NCBI RefSeq assembly: GCF_006345805.1
Contig: NC_043001.1
Location: 25,172,001 to 25,236,000 of the forward strand
Direction: 5' to 3'
DNA: 64,000 bases
Source: Octopus sinensis
Lineage: Eukaryota
In this document: positions 8,363-61,888 of the stretch, piece by piece
Position numbering within the stretch: position 1 is the first letter of the stretch
Layout of the letters: every line of letters starts with the position of its first letter
The notes under the pieces: model-generated
Seen by the model: only the letters and a program-made list of their open reading frames with translations
The model's database searches: none
Told to the model about the DNA's origin: nothing
Made by a program: the position numbers and the translations under genes

Positions 8363-9257
8363 ATGGACGATCAATTGAAAGTGGTACACGGAGGCGTAGC
8401 CCAAACAAACACAACAACAGACAGTCCCGGGGCTCCCACCACCAGTAGTCCCTTTCCGAAGGAGGATAATACCGACAGGACTACGTCGAGCACCAGCAGT
8501 TGCGATTGTGTTGTTGTCACAAACGCGGCTGCAGTAGACACGGTACTTAGCGAAAATGGCAAAGACAGCGAGGCTAAAGTCTCGAGCTTCGATGTAACTA
8601 GCAACAACACGACATCGTGCATGTCAAGCAACACAGTCGCTAGTACTACATTGACAACAACCACAACAACAGGCTCACCATCAACATTCACTGCTTCAGA
8701 TACAGCAGGGTCTGATTCCTCGTTAGACCACCGTCTATCCGAGTGTAACATAAATAAAAATGAAGATGGAAATGACAATGTTCCCGATAAAAATCCCTTG
8801 TTGGAGGTAGGATTAGGATCAATGCAGCCCGTTATGGAATCTAATAAAGCTATAATGAAAAATTCTACTTCGAATGAAATGGAAACGAGTAAGAAGTCTG
8901 ATAATGCAAATAATCATGTCAGTGTTAATCACCCTGGATCTCCCGATTCTGGTGGTGTAGAACTAACTTCAGCTATGCAACAACAAGGAAAACATGAACA
9001 TTCTAGAGAACAACAACCTGTCATTAAACAACCACTGTTGTCGTCAGATGGTCGTTCTACTTCACAGATTGCCGAGCAGAACACCACTCAGAGTTGGAAC
9101 AAAACATCTGAAGCAGGAATGGAGGAAAGCAACAATGTGGAGCGACAACTGTCGCGAACCACCTGTCCGCAGGCTGTACCTTTGGAGACGATACCTATAC
9201 CTGGTGATCACGAACAGTCAAGAATAACCCTCAACAAAAACCAAACAAACGTGCAAG
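8363..9257 (+). CDS. First coding exon of an unidentified host gene; Ser/Thr/Asn-rich, probably disordered N-terminus (298 codons + 1 nt)
   Basis: By far the longest ORF, unique and CpG-containing. In-frame upstream stop at 8333-8335. Donor CAAG|GTGGGT at 9257/9258 (phase 1) just before the ORF stop. No recognisable domain. Confidence 0.75.
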
Positions 9258-10086
9258 GTGGGTAGATTATAGCAGCATTATTACAATTTCTACTGTGAGA
9301 TATTTCGACCCTTGTGTTTACGTCATCAACATTATTCGTGCCTATTTTCCGTAGTTCAACTTAAGTTCTCCTTTCGTTTACACCTTACATTATTATTCTC
9401 CTCTTTAATATATATTTATATAACCATATGTATATATATATACTTCAATATATCTCCTTCGACACAGTTATTATTTGTGTATTCTTTTAACACATTAGAT
9501 TCTCGAAACTTGCCATGGTTAAAAATTTTTTAAAAAAGTCATTATCATGTATATTTCTATTTTATTTCTTTCTTGCCTTCGTTTTACCTTTACTTATAAT
9601 CGGTTTCATATTTCGATTTACTGTTCAAGTTGTTACTCAATGGACGGCTTCTATCATATAATTAAACTCTATATATATTCTAGGACCTCATCTTTGTTTA
9701 TTCCATGCACAACTGTTCCCCTTCGAACCCAATGCAACCATCTCGATACGTACCTTTTACCACGTATGAATAAAAACAATAAAATACTTCAACCAGATGC
9801 AAAATTAAACCATGCTAGTTGCAAATTTTGCAGTAGGTTAAAGTTGCTTTTTTTTTTTACCTAACAAAATACGAATAAGAGATACCTTGATGTGTTTTTA
9901 TCTGACACCAAATAAATTCTATCCATAGTTTTATTATTCTTCCTCATTAAACTTACAGCGTGACTTAAAACACTGTACTCATTATTTGGAGGCTTTACGT
10001 TAAAAAAGAAATACTATAGATGTGTAAATTATACACTTAAAGAGTTCTCTACTATAAAACACTTTCTTTTACACTGTCTTCAATAA

Positions 10087-13640: not shown

Positions 13641-14405
13641 GCATGTATATCATCATAGGTGAATTGGCAGTGTTGTTATAGTGCTGAATAGAATGGTTCA
13701 TGGTATTTGTCATGACTCGGCTCTCTGGCTATAAATTGCCAAGATCAACTTTACCTTCTGTCCTTTTGGGATTGATAAAAATACCAGTTAAGAGCAGTGG
13801 ATTTGCAGTATTGTTAGGGCATTAGACGGGATACCTTTTCGTTTCTGCTCTGTGAGTTATAAGTTCAGATCCCTGCCTCACCTTGTGACTGACTGATAAA
13901 TGGTGCCAGCAATTTGAAAAGCCAGTGGAATCCCAGCATCATCTTTTCTTTTTCTTTTCCTTCTTCTTAATTCTTTAACTTCATGTGGAGCATTGGATGC
14001 CAACAAGAGATCTCAATCTTTGGCAATGAATTACAGTTGTCCCCAGGTGTAGCCACCTGTCAATGCTTCAGTTTCTGTAGACATCCTCCATGTTGTTTTT
14101 GATCTACCATCCTTGCTCTTCCCTTGGTTTGGCCATTGGGGGTGGAGGGTTGCTTTGTAATGATGGGGGCAGGATTGATATATACAGTAAATATTTAGTT
14201 TGGTATTTCATATTTGTGAAATATTTAAAGCCAGCTGAGGATGACTGTACTTTTTATTCATTTGAGTTGTTTGTGTGGGAAAATACTGCAGGTTAGGGTA
14301 GGTATGGTTTGTATCGTTCTGCACAAACAACTATCACTGCCTCAAATGAATGGAAAGCAAAGTTATCCTCAGCTGGCTTCATTCAGACTCACACATATGA
14401 AATAC

Positions 14406-15302
14406 TACACTAACTATTTATTGTATATCAATCTGTCAGATTTTCCTTCATCTGCCATATTGTTCTGGATGAGATATATTTAAAATATAGAAGTTGCAAA
14501 ATATACATAGAAACTATTTTTGATCTTAATGTAGCTAATCATCATCATCATCATTTATTAATGTCCATCTTCCATGCTGGTATAGGTTGAACAGTTTCCA
14601 GTGAACCGCAGGGCTGCTTCGTGCTCCAATCTCATCTTTGTCATGGTTTCTGTAGCTGGACACCCTTCTTTTTTCATACCACTGACACTAGTGAGGTCGC
14701 CAAGTAACTCATCATCATCATCATACGTCCGTTTTCTGCGCTAGCATGGGTTGGACGGTTCAACTGGGGTCTGGGAAGCCAGAAGGCTGCACCAGGCCCA
14801 GTCTGATGTGGCAGTGTTTCTACGGCTGGATGCCCTTCCTAACGCCAACCACTCTGTGAGTGTAGTGGGTGCTTTTTACGTGCCGCCGGCACAGATGCCA
14901 GACAAGGCTGGCAAACGGCCACGATCGGATGGTGCTTTTTACGTGCCACCGGCACGGGGGCCAAGCAAGGCTTGCAACGGCCACAATCAGATGGTGCTAC
15001 ACTAACTATTTATTGTATATCAATCTGTCAGATTTTCCTTCATCAGCCATATTGTTCTGGATGAGATATATTTAAAATATAGAAGTTGCAAAACATTACA
15101 TAGAAACTATTTTTGATCTTAATGCAGCTAATCATCATCATCATCATTTATTAATGTCCATTTTCCATGCTGGTATAGGCTGAACAGTTTCCAGTGAGCT
15201 ACAGAGCTGCATCATGCTCCAATCTCATCTTTGCCATGGTTTCTGTAGCTGGACACCCTTCTTTTTTCATACCACTGACACTAGTGAGGTCGCCAAGTAA
15301 CT
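14406..15302 (+). repeat. About 300-bp direct duplication (14406-14712 and 14997-15302) flanking a family B copy
   Basis: Both copies start ctacactaactatttattgtatatcaatc and end gaggtcgccaagtaactc, with few differences. Confidence 0.9.
14712..14996 (-). mobile_element. Family B RTE 3' UTR copy
   Basis: (cat)n tail and conserved terminus. Confidence 0.9.
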
Positions 15303-15650
15303 CATCATCATCGTTTAACGTCCGTTTTCCGCGCTAGCACGGGTTGAACGGTTCGACCGGGGTCTGGGAAGCCAGGAGGCTGCACTAGGCTCCAGTCTGA
15401 TCTGGCAGTGTTTCTACAGCTGGATGCCCTTCCTAACACCAACCACTCCGCGAGTGTAGTGGGTGCTTTTTATGTGCCACTGGCACAGGTGCCAGGGGAG
15501 TCTGGCAGCGGCCTCGATCAGTTGGTGCTTTTAACGTGCCACCGACACGGAAGCCAATCAAGGCGGCACTGGCATCGGCCACGTTCGGATGGTGCATTTT
15601 ACGTGCCACTGGCATGGAAGCCAATCGAGGCGACGCTGGCATCGGCCACC
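15302..15650 (-). mobile_element. Family B RTE 3' UTR copy
   Basis: (cat)n tail, conserved terminus and three units. Confidence 0.9.
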
Positions 15651-18870: not shown

Positions 18871-19395
18871 TTGGATGGAATTTGTAGAAGTATATTTTCT
18901 ACAGCTGGATGCCTTTCCTGTTGCCAACCTGGAACCATGTGATTGGGAAGAAAACTTCCTACCTCATTACTACACCTGCATTTATATATATAAAGTAGAG
19001 CAGTAGATAGGACTCTGGTATCTTCAAGGAATAGCCTGGCTCAGTATGCAGGAGAGCAGCAAGTACAAACTCCATACACGGTACTGAATGCAAACTATAG
19101 ACAAAGGAGAGTTATAGTGGAATTACTGACAGACTAACAGAGAAAGTAAGCCTCATATGTAACAGATGCTTCTGTACAGAACATACTGGAAATAAATTCT
19201 CTTAAATGCTCTGATGGCTCACTAGAAGTAGCCGATAGCTTTTGTTACCTGGGAGATGTAACTAGCAGGGGAAGTAATGACTCCAAAAGTATAGTAGCCA
19301 GGGTAAAAACTGATTGAAAAAAGTTCAAAGAGCTTCTACTGGTAACAAAGGTTTTTTTCCCCTCAAAGTGAAGGGAAAATTGTATGACACTTATT

Positions 19396-19411
19396 GTATT
19401 GCTTCGGCAAT

Positions 19412-19451
<40 letters not shown>

Positions 19452-19502
19452 GGCCCCCTGCGCAAGGATGACATGCAAATTCGTGAAGCGTTCCATATTT
19501 TT
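19396..19502 (+). pseudogene. U6: Full-length U6 snRNA retrocopy (107 nt)
   Basis: GTATTGCTTCGGCAATACATATACTAAAATTGGAACGATACAGAGAAGATTAGCATGGCCCCCTGCGCAAGGATGACATGCAAATTCGTGAAGCGTTCCATATTTTT. ACAGAGA box and AGC triad intact. One extra C and one CpG-type change versus the vertebrate U6 as remembered. Upstream flank is LINE ORF, so no Pol III promoter. Confidence 0.96.
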
Positions 19503-19781
19503 CGAGCGAGGTCATCACCAGTGCCGCTGGACTGGCTCCTGTGCAGGTGGTACGTAAAAAGCACCATTTGGGTGTGGCCGTTGCCTGTACCACCAAACTG
19601 GCCCTCATGCCTGTGGCACATAAAATCACCCACTACACTCTCAGAGTGGTTGGCATTAGGAAGGGCATCCAGCTGTAGAAACTCTGCCTGATCAGATTGG
19701 AGTCTGGTTTGCCAGACCTCAATCAAATCGTCCAACCCATGCTAGCATGGAAAGCGGACATTAAATGATGATCATCATGAT
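19503..19781 (+). mobile_element. Family B RTE 3' UTR directly fused to U6
   Basis: Continues cgagcgaggtc..., matching 26480 onward, to the conserved terminus and (atg)n tail. Confidence 0.93.
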
Positions 19782-20428
19782 GTTAGAACTGTGGTGCTAC
19801 ATGGTAGTGAGACATGGGCCTTGAATGTAGAGGACTTGAAATGACTAGAAATAAAAGAAGCTAGCATGATCCTTTGGATGTGCAAATGTGTTGTGTAAAA
19901 TTGGGCATGAGAGAAATCAGATGTAGTACACAAGAAAGACTGATATGGACATGTGATTCATATGTAATTAGTTGTGAACAGAACTGCATACTTCACCAGC
20001 TTTTGCCTGAAATCACTAATCTTTCTCTCTACCCAGAACCATACACTCTTCCAATCTTTACCCACCCACACTTTCCATTCTCCTCTTCCCATTTACTTCC
20101 GCTCACCTTGTATCTTATTTGTCTACCCTGACATTTCCACTATTTTCACCTCTTTCCAACTCTACCTCAGCCACTCCCACCCTCTCTTCTGTCATGTGAG
20201 TAACCATGTACATACACTACAGCAAGAAACCTGTTTCATTCTGGACCCTTCTCTCACACTGTAACCCTTCATCTCACTGCATAAAGCTGCCTCTCTCTCT
20301 ACTGTAGTCCTACTCAGTGAAAGGGGATCATTGTCTTGTGAGCTATATGGTTACCTCAGTAGTGCTGGTACCATGAAAAAAGCACCCAGTAAAGGGATTA
20401 ATATTAAGAAGAGTATCCAGCTGTAGAA

Positions 20429-22650: not shown

Positions 22651-23280
22651 TACTCTTTACTCTCTTTTATACTCTTTTACTTGTTTCAGTCATTTGACTG
22701 CGGCCATGCTGGAGCACCGCCTTTAGTCGACCAAATCGACCCCGGGACTTATTCTTTGTAAGCCCAGTACTTATTCTATCGGTCTCTTTTTGCCGAACCG
22801 CTAAGTGACGGGGACGTAAACACACCAGCATCGGTTGTCAAGCAATGCTAGGGGGACAAACACAGACACACACACACACATATACTCTTTTCTTTTTCTC
22901 TTTTACTTGTTTCAGTCATTTGACTGCGGCCATGCTGGAGCACCGCCTTTATTCAACCAAATCGACCCCGGGACTTATTCTTTGTAAGCCCAGTACTTAT
23001 TCTATCGGTCTCTTTTTGCCGAACCGCTAAGTGACGGGGACGTAAACACACCAGCATCGGTTGTCAAGCAATGCTAGGGGGACAAACACAGACATACAAA
23101 CATACATACATATACATATATATATATATACGACGGGCTTCTTTCAGTTTCCGTCTACCAGATCCACTCACAAGGCATTGGTCGGCCCGGGGCTATAGCA
23201 GAAGACACTTGCCCAAGATGCCACACAGTGGGACTGAACCCGGAACCATGTGGTTGGTTAGCAAGCTACTTACCACACAT
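22651..23280 (-). mobile_element. SINE family A with tandemly duplicated 3' half
   Basis: 22651-22882 repeats 22883-23100, and both share private variants. Confidence 0.9.
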
Positions 23281-26385: not shown

Positions 26386-26762
26386 AAGCTGGCCTTCGTG
26401 CCAATGACACGTTAAACACACCATTCGAGCGTGATTGTTACCGTGTCGCCTTACTAGCACTTGTGCTGGTGGCATGTGAAACATTCGAGCGAGGTTGTCG
26501 CCAGTGCTGCTGGACTGGCTCCTGTGCAGGTGGCACATAAAAAGCACAATTTGGGCGTGATGTTGCCAGTTCCCACCAAACTGGCTCTCGTGCCGGTGGC
26601 ATGTAAAAGCACCCACTACACTCTGAGTGGTTGGCGTTAGGAAGAGCATCCAGCTGTAGAAACTCTGCCAGATCAGATTGGAGTCTGGTTCACCAGACCT
26701 CAATCAAATCTTCCAACCCATGCTAGCATGGAAAGCAGACGTTAAATGATGATGATGATGAT
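26386..26762 (+). mobile_element. Family B RTE 3' UTR copy (deletion subtype)
   Basis: Three units, terminus, (gat)n. Confidence 0.9.
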
Positions 26763-26985
26763 GAGCGTGGCCATAGCCAGTACCACCTGACTGGCCCTCG
26801 TGCCGGTGGCACATAAAAGCACCCACTACACTCTCGAAGTGGTTGGTGTTAGGAAGGGCATCCAGCTGTAGAAACTCTGCCAGATCAGATTCAAGTCTGG
26901 TGCAGCCATCTGGTCCACCAGTCCTCAGTCAAATCGTCCAACCCATGCTAGCATGGAAAGCGGACGTTAAACGATGATGATGATG
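26763..26985 (+). mobile_element. Family B RTE 3' UTR copy abutting the previous tail
   Basis: Starts immediately after the (gat)n of the previous copy. Confidence 0.9.
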
Positions 26986-28254
26986 ACAGCTGTAGCATTG
27001 TTGCAAGCTCTTGTCATCCTAGCTAATTTGTCATAAGTTTAGATGCCTTCATTTCTTTTTTACCTGTTTGAGTATGTTAAAAATTGTGTTTCTCTGGAAG
27101 TTTTCAGATTTCTTAATGTTGTCTTTACCTAAGGTTTAATGAAACAAGCATTAGAAATATAGACATAAAGTTATGAATCAACTAAATAAAGAGAAATGGA
27201 GAGAAAAAAGAACAAATTATTGGACAAATTAGGTAATGAATCAGAACCAGGTGATTGCTTGATATTTGAGATAGAATATATTTTGGGTTTGTATTGAGAT
27301 ATAGAAAAATAGGAATCTTATGTGTGGTCTTATGTTTAAAAAGTTCACTTCAGAATTATGTGATTCTTAGTTCAATCTCATTACATCACTCTTTGACCAA
27401 ATGTCTTCTCTCGTAACTTTGAGTGAAATTGAATTGGTGGAAACTGTGCTGAAGCCAATTAGTTGGACTGTACTTGTTCTTGGTTTACATACTTGCTTTG
27501 TTATGCAACTGAGTACCAACACCTAGCTCATGCATGTCTTTACTAGAACTCACTCTGTTGCTAGCATTTGGATCAAGGTAACCTGATACCTTGGATCAAA
27601 TTTTAATCTGAGGGTAACCTGATAATTTCTCTACCTTTACCCACTTATCTCAGAGGACCTGAAAAGAGTCAAAGAACTGTCCATTCTCCTCATGATTAAA
27701 CCCCCCCCCCCAAAAAAAAATAATTCTAATCACTTGACAAAGAAACAGCTTCTACCTTACATTTTAACAATCAGGAAGATGATTCTCTTCTTAATTTAAG
27801 ATGACTATGATCAAAGAGATTTTGCTTTTTCTCTTATATAGGAAATATTCACCCCCCCCCTTTTTTTTTTAGGGAATTGTAAGTTGCTCGGATAGAGCTA
27901 AGTCTTTTGGGGACTGGTTTTGGAAATAATGTTTGCTGAGTAAATTGTAACTTACATCTTGAAGGATTATTAGGAGTGATTCATGAGAAGCTGTGTAACC
28001 CCAGGTCAAAGTTAGTATGTCGTGTGGTTCTTTTGAAATAAAGCTTGCACTTTATACATTCAAATGTTGCTGAACTACCAAGTTACCATTAGAAAACGGA
28101 TATTGACAATTCTTTTTTATAGAAATAGTTGACTAATACCAAGTTTAAAAGTGCATTTAGTAGGTAGAAACTGAAAAAAGTCCATTGTATTCTTTTATTC
28201 TTTCATGTGGCTGCCATCATGCACCACCGTAGTGTATATATACATATTTAATAT

Positions 28255-60419: not shown

Positions 60420-61745
60420 TTCATCATCATCATCATCATTTAACATCCACTTTCCGTGCTGGCATAGGTTGGACGGTTTGACTGAGGACTAGCAAGCCAG
60501 GAGGTTGCACCAGGCTCCAATCTGATCTGACAAAGTTTCTACAGCTGGATGCCCTTCCTAATGCCAACCACTCCAAGAGTGTAGTGGGTGCTTTTTATGT
60601 GCCACCGGCACAGGGGCCAGTCAGATGGCACTGGCATCAACCACACTCGAATGTTGCTTTTCATGTACCACTGGCATGGGAGCCAGTCAGACAGCACTAG
60701 CATCAACCACACTTGAATGTTGCTTTTCATGTACCACTGGCATGGGAGCCAGTCAGACAGCACTGGCATCAACCACACTCAAATGGTGCTTTTTATGTAC
60801 CACCAGCTCTGGTGCCAGTCAGGTGGCTCTGGCATCAGCCATGATTACAATTTTGCTTGATTTATCAGGTCTTTTCAAGCACTGCATATTACCTGACAAT
60901 TGAAGGGTACTTTTAAACAGGCCAGTTATGCAACATTGCCTTCAACCACAGCTACGATCTTACTAGACTTGCCGGGTTTTCTCAATTGCAGCATATCTCC
61001 AAAGGTCTTGGTCACTTGTCATTGCTTCTGTAAGGGCCCAATGTTCAAAGGTCATGCTTCACTACCTCATCCCATGTCTTCCTAGATCTACCTCTTCCAC
61101 AGGTTCTTTCCACTATTAGGGTGTGACACCTCTTCACACAGCTTTCCTCATCCATGCGCTATATATATGACTATACCAGTGCAGTCGTTTCTCTTGCAAC
61201 CACATCTGATGCTTCTTATGTCCAACTTTTCTCTCAGGTCACTTACACCCTGTTGTATATGCACACTGACATTACACATCCAGCGGAGCATACTAGCTTC
61301 ATTTCTTTCAAGCCTATACATGTCCACAGCAGTCACAGCCCATGTTTCACTGCCATGTAGCATGGCTGTTCGCACACATGCATCATACTGTCTACCTTTC
61401 ACTCTGAGCGAGAGGCCCTTTGTTACCAGCTGAGGTAGGAGCTCCTTGAACTTTGCTCAGGCTATTCTTATTCTAGCCGCTACACTCTCAGAGCATCCAC
61501 TCCCGCTACTGATTTGGTCATCTAGGTAACAGAAGCTATCAACTACTTCTAGTTTTTCCTCCTGGCATGTGAAGGAATCTAATTTCTGTACATCTTTGCT
61601 GTTTATTACCACTGTGCATCTGTCACACACAAAAACTATCTTCCCAGTTAACCTTCCTTTGATATTGCTGTACCTTTTATGTGTCCATAGCTTACACTGA
61701 GTACATCTTATGGAGATTCTACCTACGTCTTTTCTGATCGAGCAG
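60420..61745 (-). mobile_element. 5'-truncated RTE-like LINE: ORF2 C-terminus + 3' UTR with about 66-bp tandem units + (atg)n tail
   Basis: Minus strand: CSI..RCTQCKLWTHKR..CDRC, LEVVDSFCYL, KGRQYDACVRTAMLHGSETW, RNEASMLRWMC, then the family B units and terminus. Confidence 0.93.
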
Positions 61746-61888
61746 TATAGGTGGTGAGGGTGGGATGGACAGGCGCACCGCTAACTGCAAAGCACTGTGT
61801 CAGCCCTATTCCCTAGCAGTAGCCAATGTGGCGTAACCTCAAACAAAGCTAGCTACTAATTAACAATCAAATACAAAAAATAAACAAT

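Follow-up and report, generated by a model that had tools for sequence, protein, structure and literature searches.

A full-length U6 snRNA lies head to tail, in the same orientation and with zero spacer, on the truncated 3' end of an octopus LINE at 19396-19781 of the window, the window being the whole 64-kb stretch of DNA that was analysed. Judging from the sequence, this U6-B unit (B being the repeat family that forms the LINE part) is very probably a chimeric retropseudogene that arose in one retrotransposition by an octopus LINE, presumably APE-type and plausibly RTE-like, recognising its own 3' end. The parts of the unit, its host site and the copies with which it was compared are located in Table 1.

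Table 1. Features of the U6-B unit, of its host site and of related copies (positions are those of the window).
Feature	Position	Strand	Evidence or remark
Host, upstream part: PHD-finger / C-terminal RT fragment of an older LINE, decayed; last residues ...KVKGKLYDTY	19035-19394	+	tblastn of octopus LINE proteins P0121-P0137
Extra T between the host and G1 of U6	19395	+	Empty-site alignment gap-free only with 19395-19781 removed
U6 snRNA retrocopy, full-length	19396-19502	+	ACAGAGA and AGC boxes intact
Terminal T5 of U6 (Pol III terminator / U-tail) and junction	19498-19502	+	Last TT overlaps B (...CATT/CGAGCG)
B part 1: pair of internal ~62-66-nt tandem units, the first cut at the junction	19503-19630	+	Alignment of B copies
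B part 2: conserved unique 3' region	19631-19765	+	Contains GGTTGGCATTAGGAAGGGCATCCAGCTGTAGAAAC (19648-19682) and the terminal stem-loop
Terminal stem-loop CGTC...CCATGCTAGCATGG...GGAC	19729-19760	+	Predicted; consensus fold of 16 copies, weak covariation
Trimer microsatellite tail TGATGATCATCATGAT	19766-19781	+	Proposed site of RT priming
Host, downstream part, restarting VRTVVLHGSETWALNVEDLK...	19782-19948	+	tblastn, translation
Empty site as expected without the insertion: ...GACACTTAT/GTTAGAACTG...			
Closest B relative, unfused	26486-26762	+	Shows the sequence 5' of the junction point: ...GTGAAACATTCGAGCGAGG
Partner LINE, reference copy	60423-61795	-	C-terminal RT ORF (PHD finger ... DLWRYAAIEKTRQV, two stops), ~120 nt spacer, B units, conserved tail, (GAT)n

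The U6 part matched the Rfam family RF00026 over model positions 1-105/105 (109.2 bits, E = 1.5e-27) and was the sole Rfam match across the 64-kb window, even at E ≤ 0.1; one U6 only was found in the window by blastn. The copy is 107 nt long, its final T5 included. It carries one clear lesion (ACACGC>ACATGC), with possibly up to two more transitions in the 5' stem. Bona fide U6 genes for comparison were recovered from metagenome contigs, and two further candidate lesions were rejected on finding them in real U6 genes: the 5-C variant, with one C more in GGCCCCCUGCG, and a short 5' stem of 7 bp, GUAUUGC/GCAAUAC. Upstream of the copy, LINE coding sequence extends to -2 and there is no TATA-like box at about -30, unlike the real U6 genes compared, which have A/T-rich boxes at about -30. 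With no U6 promoter upstream, the U6 copy is a processed copy and not a gene, and the U6-B copy is promoterless, inert and dead on arrival. Two eukaryotic metagenome contigs have U6 close to other RNA genes: L001 (ENA ERZ17087970) has three U6 genes and a tRNA by the start of the SSU rRNA, and in L003 (ENA ERZ27293390) some 430 bp separate a U6 gene from one for SRP RNA.

The U6 is followed by 279 nt of 5'-truncated family B (19503-19781), the end of which is a (GAT/ATG)n tail. Family B was represented in the window by more than 20 pieces (blastn) and by 17 tail cores. Its layout is a variable number of tandem units of ~62-67 nt, a unique region of ~135 nt, a stem-loop and (GAT)n, in which all B copies terminate. 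The shortest copy measures about 49 nt and the longest 1.37 kb, the 3' end being common to all, and this variable 5' truncation is typical of LINE insertions and of target-primed reverse transcription. The nearest relative of the B in the chimera is the copy at 26486-26762, which is 88.6% identical over 280 nt and has a 13-nt deletion in common with it. A tRNA-headed SINE was considered as the identity of B and rejected, with no tRNA in the window and variable 5' truncation instead; no tRNA or other small-RNA head was found on B copies by Rfam at E ≤ 0.1 across the 64-kb window. The proteins P0159 and P0161 were also considered, as arrays of B units, and rejected; P0161 is bacterial, with a type IX secretion sorting domain.

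A perfect palindrome, CCATGCTAGCATGG, nested in CGTC/GGAC, precedes the tail in the chimera and in 16 other B tails. As RNA, the predicted terminal stem-loop of B reads CGUC...CCAUGCUAGCAUGG...GGAC, and its position just before the tail makes it a candidate RT recognition element, with weak covariation among the copies. Two B copies stand head to tail at 26486-26986 (+), where the second (26767-26986, 5'-truncated) begins directly on the (GAT)n of its predecessor; this pair suggests a preference of the LINE for priming on its own microsatellite. Elsewhere in the window, a tandem duplication of ~593 bp with 89-98% identity occupies 14405-15590 and has B copies inside, so that those at 14709-14998 and 15304-15639 count as duplicates and not as independent insertions. 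Another tandem pair, at 22658-23108, consists of two copies (96% match) of a 226-bp unit with ...TCAGTCATTTGACTGCGGCCATGCTGGAGCACCGCC... and belongs to another repeat family, with no relation to B.

Family B is the 3' UTR of an octopus LINE. In the reference copy of this partner LINE (61795-60423, read on the minus strand), the RT frame, ...LEVVDSFCYLDD...LHGSETWAV...DLWRYAAIEKTRQV and two stops, continues into B with no microsatellite between. The same order was present in an independent public contig, L007, with an ORF end (...DRDLWKYAVREKTRQD and a stop), a spacer, four B units, the tail and (GAT)n. The assignment of B to the 3' UTR follows from the ORF end leading into B in both. The nearest proteins to the partner LINE were from Octopus bimaculoides and O. 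vulgaris (70-85% identity), which marks the window as octopus DNA, and both RVT_1 and a PHD finger were confirmed in relatives. The finger, of PHD type (PF00628), was located at 61560-61795 (-) and in P0121, P0126 and P0127, with the RT core on one side and the C-terminal RT region on the other, and a Nematostella relative, 45% identical, has the same layout. Pfam gave no match on the decayed LINE fragments of the window. No full-length copy of the partner LINE was found in the window and the fetched loci, and the window holds only the C-terminal RT part.

The related ORFs P0124 and P0132 finish in ...RPTHASMEK(K)DVKR, with the stop codon within the (GAT)n tail. In related octopus LINE ORFs, the ...PTHASMEK-DVKR C-terminus and its stop are encoded by the final ~40 nt of B (CCAACCCATGCTAGCATGGAAAGCGGACGTTAAACGATGA), as at 60423-60470 (-) and across B tails. 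The B-bearing subfamily, with a 3' UTR of ~550 nt, appears to have gained a repeat-containing UTR of ~500 nt upstream of this coding end. A very short 3' UTR dominated by tandem repeats of 3-5 nt is a hallmark of RTE, reportedly described by Malik and Eickbush in 1998. A short, repeat-dominated 3' UTR and a stop codon in the trimer tail were reported for octopus RTE-2_OV (PMC9115989). The ends of P0124 and P0132 agree with both descriptions, but the B-bearing subfamily departs from them in the length of its 3' UTR. It is established that the partner LINE is a non-L1 element whose 3' end is sequence-specific and whose tail is a trimer repeat; that it is RTE-like is plausible from the way in which the related ORFs end.

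The unit sits inside the decayed remains of an older LINE, which by translation and protein similarity belongs to the same broad family as the partner LINE. The flanks translate as ...KVKGKLYDTY / VRTVVLHGSETWALNVEDLK. When the 387 nt at 19395-19781 were taken out, an in-frame host LINE RT fragment was restored with no host base lost, and the nucleotide alignment of the joined sequence (19394 to 19782) with the paralogous LINE at about 61.3-61.5 kb had no gap across the join. Because this removal restores a gap-free, in-frame host, U6 and B arrived in one event. The 5' ends of B have a frequency of about 1.7e-4 per position and strand, and the zero-spacer, same-orientation abutment inside one clean insertion is not chance. 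Any target-site duplication is limited to 2 nt at most ('AT') and is indistinguishable from the tail; the other B copies in the window are likewise without obvious target-site duplications, so that their absence is normal for the B element. Points that count against the one-event reading are the unexplained extra T, the unrecognisable target-site duplication, the single locus and the unequal decay of the two parts described below.

The orthologous locus was looked up with the ORF at 8363-9265 as anchor, and only Logan contigs of 1.6-2.4 kb were returned, from another species (80% identity) and short of the site. The anchor itself (+ strand) is a Ser/Thr-rich ORF of 300 aa, to which an ORF of 301 aa in Logan SRR11869394 and SRR11869384 is 80% identical. 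The anchor probably represents a genuine coding exon, conserved in one related species, and the U6-B unit would be intronic and in sense orientation if the gene of this exon extends downstream.

At the junction (...CCATATTTTT/CGAGCGAGG) the T5 of U6 abuts B directly, the U6-B junction string being ...ATATTTTT/CGAGCGAGG. The B copy at 26486 reads ...AACATTCGAGCGAGG (...AACATT/CGAGCGAGG) at the junction point, and two T's can be assigned to either partner. TT makes up 4-5% of the dinucleotides in the B references, and with TT this scarce the overlap is mildly above chance (p about 0.05). A 2-nt TT microhomology is what microhomology-assisted template switching predicts. The alignments bore out the observations of the sequence-only reading, which had noted a TT overlap with the B copy of the 26480 region, one extra T and no clear target-site duplication. 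Its description of the unit as a U6/LINE-3'-end chimera was likewise confirmed (complete Rfam model, no spacer, B with its (GAT)n), as were its claims that U6 and B came as a single insertion, by the gap-free, in-frame join of 19394 to 19782, and that B is a LINE 3' UTR, by the reference copy and L007.

The following order of events would account for the unit. The LINE endonuclease and RT would have primed at a nick, ...TAT/GTT..., in the older LINE, with the (GAU)n tail of an RNA that carried B as template, and the RT would have copied 279 nt of B. The target, TATGTT, includes ATG, and microhomology between tail and target in priming fits both this ATG and the B copy seated on a B tail at 26486-26986. 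The RT would then have moved from B to a mature U6 snRNA and copied it from the 3' U-tract to the 5' end. The likelier route for this move would be template switching, in which the end of the cDNA (...AA-3') pairs with the terminal UU of U6 through the 2-nt microhomology; alternatively, U6 may already have been ligated to a fragment of B RNA. One untemplated base may have been added at the 5' end of the U6 RNA (an A in the cDNA, giving the extra T at 19395), and the cDNA would finally have been joined to the upstream end of the target, with a target-site duplication of 0 or at most 2 nt.

Prior formation of the chimera as RNA may be entertained tentatively. An RtcB-type ligase would join the 2',3'-cyclic phosphate end of U6 to the 5'-OH of a B-tailed LINE RNA, and the product would be reverse-transcribed via the B tail. 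The completeness of U6 to its U5 end and the join without filler agree with this route, and RtcB has been demonstrated in human cells to ligate U6 to other RNAs, L1 among them, ahead of retrotransposition (PMC6789731). A pyrimidine-preferring RNase that leaves a 5'-OH would likewise be consistent with the break after UU and could yield a fragment beginning CGAGCG... However, the TT overlap, expected by chance at ~5%, is not required by ligation, and no feature of the DNA sets this route apart from template switching. The DNA sequence is compatible with template switching and with prior U6-B RNA ligation, and cannot decide between the two; the conserved U6 ligation pathway suggested by the sequence-only reading is accordingly not supported in the form in which it was stated.

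Recurrent events were also considered. Recurrent capture of U6 by the octopus RTE-like LINE, or membership of U6-B in a transcribed, amplifying U6-headed family, maybe the 'SINE/U' of O. vulgaris, is improbable; if either were true, U6 capture would be regular in protostomes and the first U6-headed SINE would have been found. In its specific form, an amplifying U6-headed retroposon ('U6-SINE') would descend from a master U6 gene with B downstream, its read-through U6-B RNA being mobilised via the B tail, and this is quite improbable. Pol III running past T5 could reach the tail, with no TTTT run in B, but in 279 nt such a lack has about an even chance of arising at random (P about 0.5) and carries no significance. 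The repeat annotation of O. vulgaris includes 'SINE/U' (369 kb) and 'U-L1', which are automated labels without published sequences (PMC13282606). RTE-type LINEs make SINEs by fusion with tRNA or 5S rRNA, according to what PMC13174262 relays of Kojima (2018; PMC5786205). Against such a family, the window holds one U6 versus at least 17 B tails, and metazoan U6 promoters are upstream and not in the RNA (Kojima 2015, PMC4494074), the upstream sequence here being a LINE ORF with no TATA-like box. No second U6-B ORF was found in two protein databases, which hold almost no octopus B. The nascent U6-headed SINE of the sequence-only reading was thus not upheld, given the single copy in the window, the lack of an upstream promoter and the intact T5 terminator between the U6 head and the B body.

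Searches with the junction itself gave no further copy. Junction-spanning ORFs, in word-indexed and in exhaustive searches of representative proteins, matched only ORFs of ordinary U6 genes and the B-only P0186, in databases nearly devoid of octopus B. Word-indexed protein matches compared with the window by tblastn had no similarity to B. The junction 19-mer had eight matches in JGI metagenomes, all of them chance matches in bacterial DNA without U6.

The two parts of the unit differed in apparent decay. CpGs were kept at 4 of 13 positions in B versus 5 of 6 in U6 (about p = 0.03-0.05), and the B part was 8.2% from a mixed consensus, with 1-3 changes in the 107 nt of U6. Decay thus looks more advanced in B than in U6, with borderline significance, and because this decay is unequal, equal age of the two is not demonstrable from their sequences. 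Dating by CpG decay, with B older than U6, was rejected as confounded by the source copy of B. The B template RNA was probably transcribed from an old, diverged genomic copy and not from an active master, and the U6 RNA from conserved genes.

The less decayed look of U6 and the lack of a target-site duplication linking both ends are what two sequential insertions, the second landing exactly on the boundary of the first, would have in their favour. This history is nonetheless highly improbable, as the second element would have to strike one nucleotide in the same orientation with no base duplicated or deleted, and a lone U6 retrocopy needs a tail of its own, of which there is none between U6 and B or after U6; stringent-type LINEs are, moreover, reported to yield chimeras only and no tailed U6 (PMC4476161). 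A misjoin of U6 and B by the assembler is barely credible: both are repeats, but they have no common k-mer longer than ~4 nt at the join, and the outer boundaries form one clean interruption of the host ORF, which is not the product of a false join.

Insertion of U6 and B in a single retrotransposition places the octopus unit in a class described by Doucet et al. (2015), who described U6 fused to L2 and Mon-1 in platypus and, in the anole, to L1-like, L2-like (L2_Acar) and RTE-like (RTEX-2_Acar) LINEs and to AnolisSINE2, and who concluded that U6 template switching is general to LINEs and that stringent-type LINEs give only chimeras (PMC4476161). A U6 chimera outside the L1 system, which the sequence-only reading had taken as new, had therefore already been published for L2, RTE-like LINEs, Mon-1 and AnolisSINE2. 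No invertebrate U6/LINE chimera was found in the literature searched. The novelty appears to be taxonomic, this being the first cephalopod example found of a class already known for L1, L2 and RTE-like LINEs, and a single locus opens no new mechanism. In practice, the 3' flanks of cephalopod U6 matches need checking before they are annotated as genes, and U6-B junctions genome-wide would be a cheap marker of the period of activity of this very abundant octopus LINE family.

The octopus unit resembles U6-RTEX-2_Acar, U6-L2_Acar, U6-AnolisSINE2, U6-L2 and U6-Mon-1 in having U6 head to tail on a truncated LINE 3' end, the LINE in each case recognising its own tail. As here, the vertebrate chimeras of stringent LINEs have no poly(A)-tailed U6 form, and their published reading is template switching in target-primed reverse transcription. 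Target-site duplications were reported in the platypus chimeras, whereas none is recognisable in the octopus unit or in the other copies of its partner LINE in the window. The partner LINE differs from the vertebrate stringent LINEs in its long, repeat-containing 3' UTR, its PHD finger and its mollusc host.

Mammalian U6/L1 pseudogenes (Buzdin 2002; Garcia-Perez 2007; Moldovan 2019, PMC6789731, the last for the RtcB ligation model) are similar in their full-length U6, with the U-tract joined to a truncated LINE 3' end as one unit. L1, in contrast, has a poly(A) end and target-site duplications of 7-20 bp and also makes U6-poly(A) copies, and the octopus unit has (GAT)n, no recognisable target-site duplication and a non-L1 partner. 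A small-RNA head on a LINE-derived tail, with a template switch as the proposed founding event, is shared with SINEU, the U1/U2-headed family of crocodilians (Kojima 2015, PMC4494074), and with SINEs from fusions of RTE with tRNA or 5S (Kojima 2018, PMC5786205). SINEU and the RTE-tRNA/5S SINEs are multi-copy, with shared junctions and subfamilies, whereas the octopus unit occurs once in the window, is headed by U6, whose promoter is external, and contains the T5 terminator internally.

Outside mammals, template-jump chimeras are also known from the MGL-LINE/WEIRD retrogenes of Magnaporthe grisea, which differ from the octopus unit in their fungal host and in a 5' partner that is not U6, and which show the template-jump property to be ancient among LINEs (PMC2104539). 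The octopus unit widens the range of U6/LINE chimeras from vertebrates to a mollusc, and it supports U6 jumping or ligation as a general and ancient property of LINEs and not a quirk of L1.
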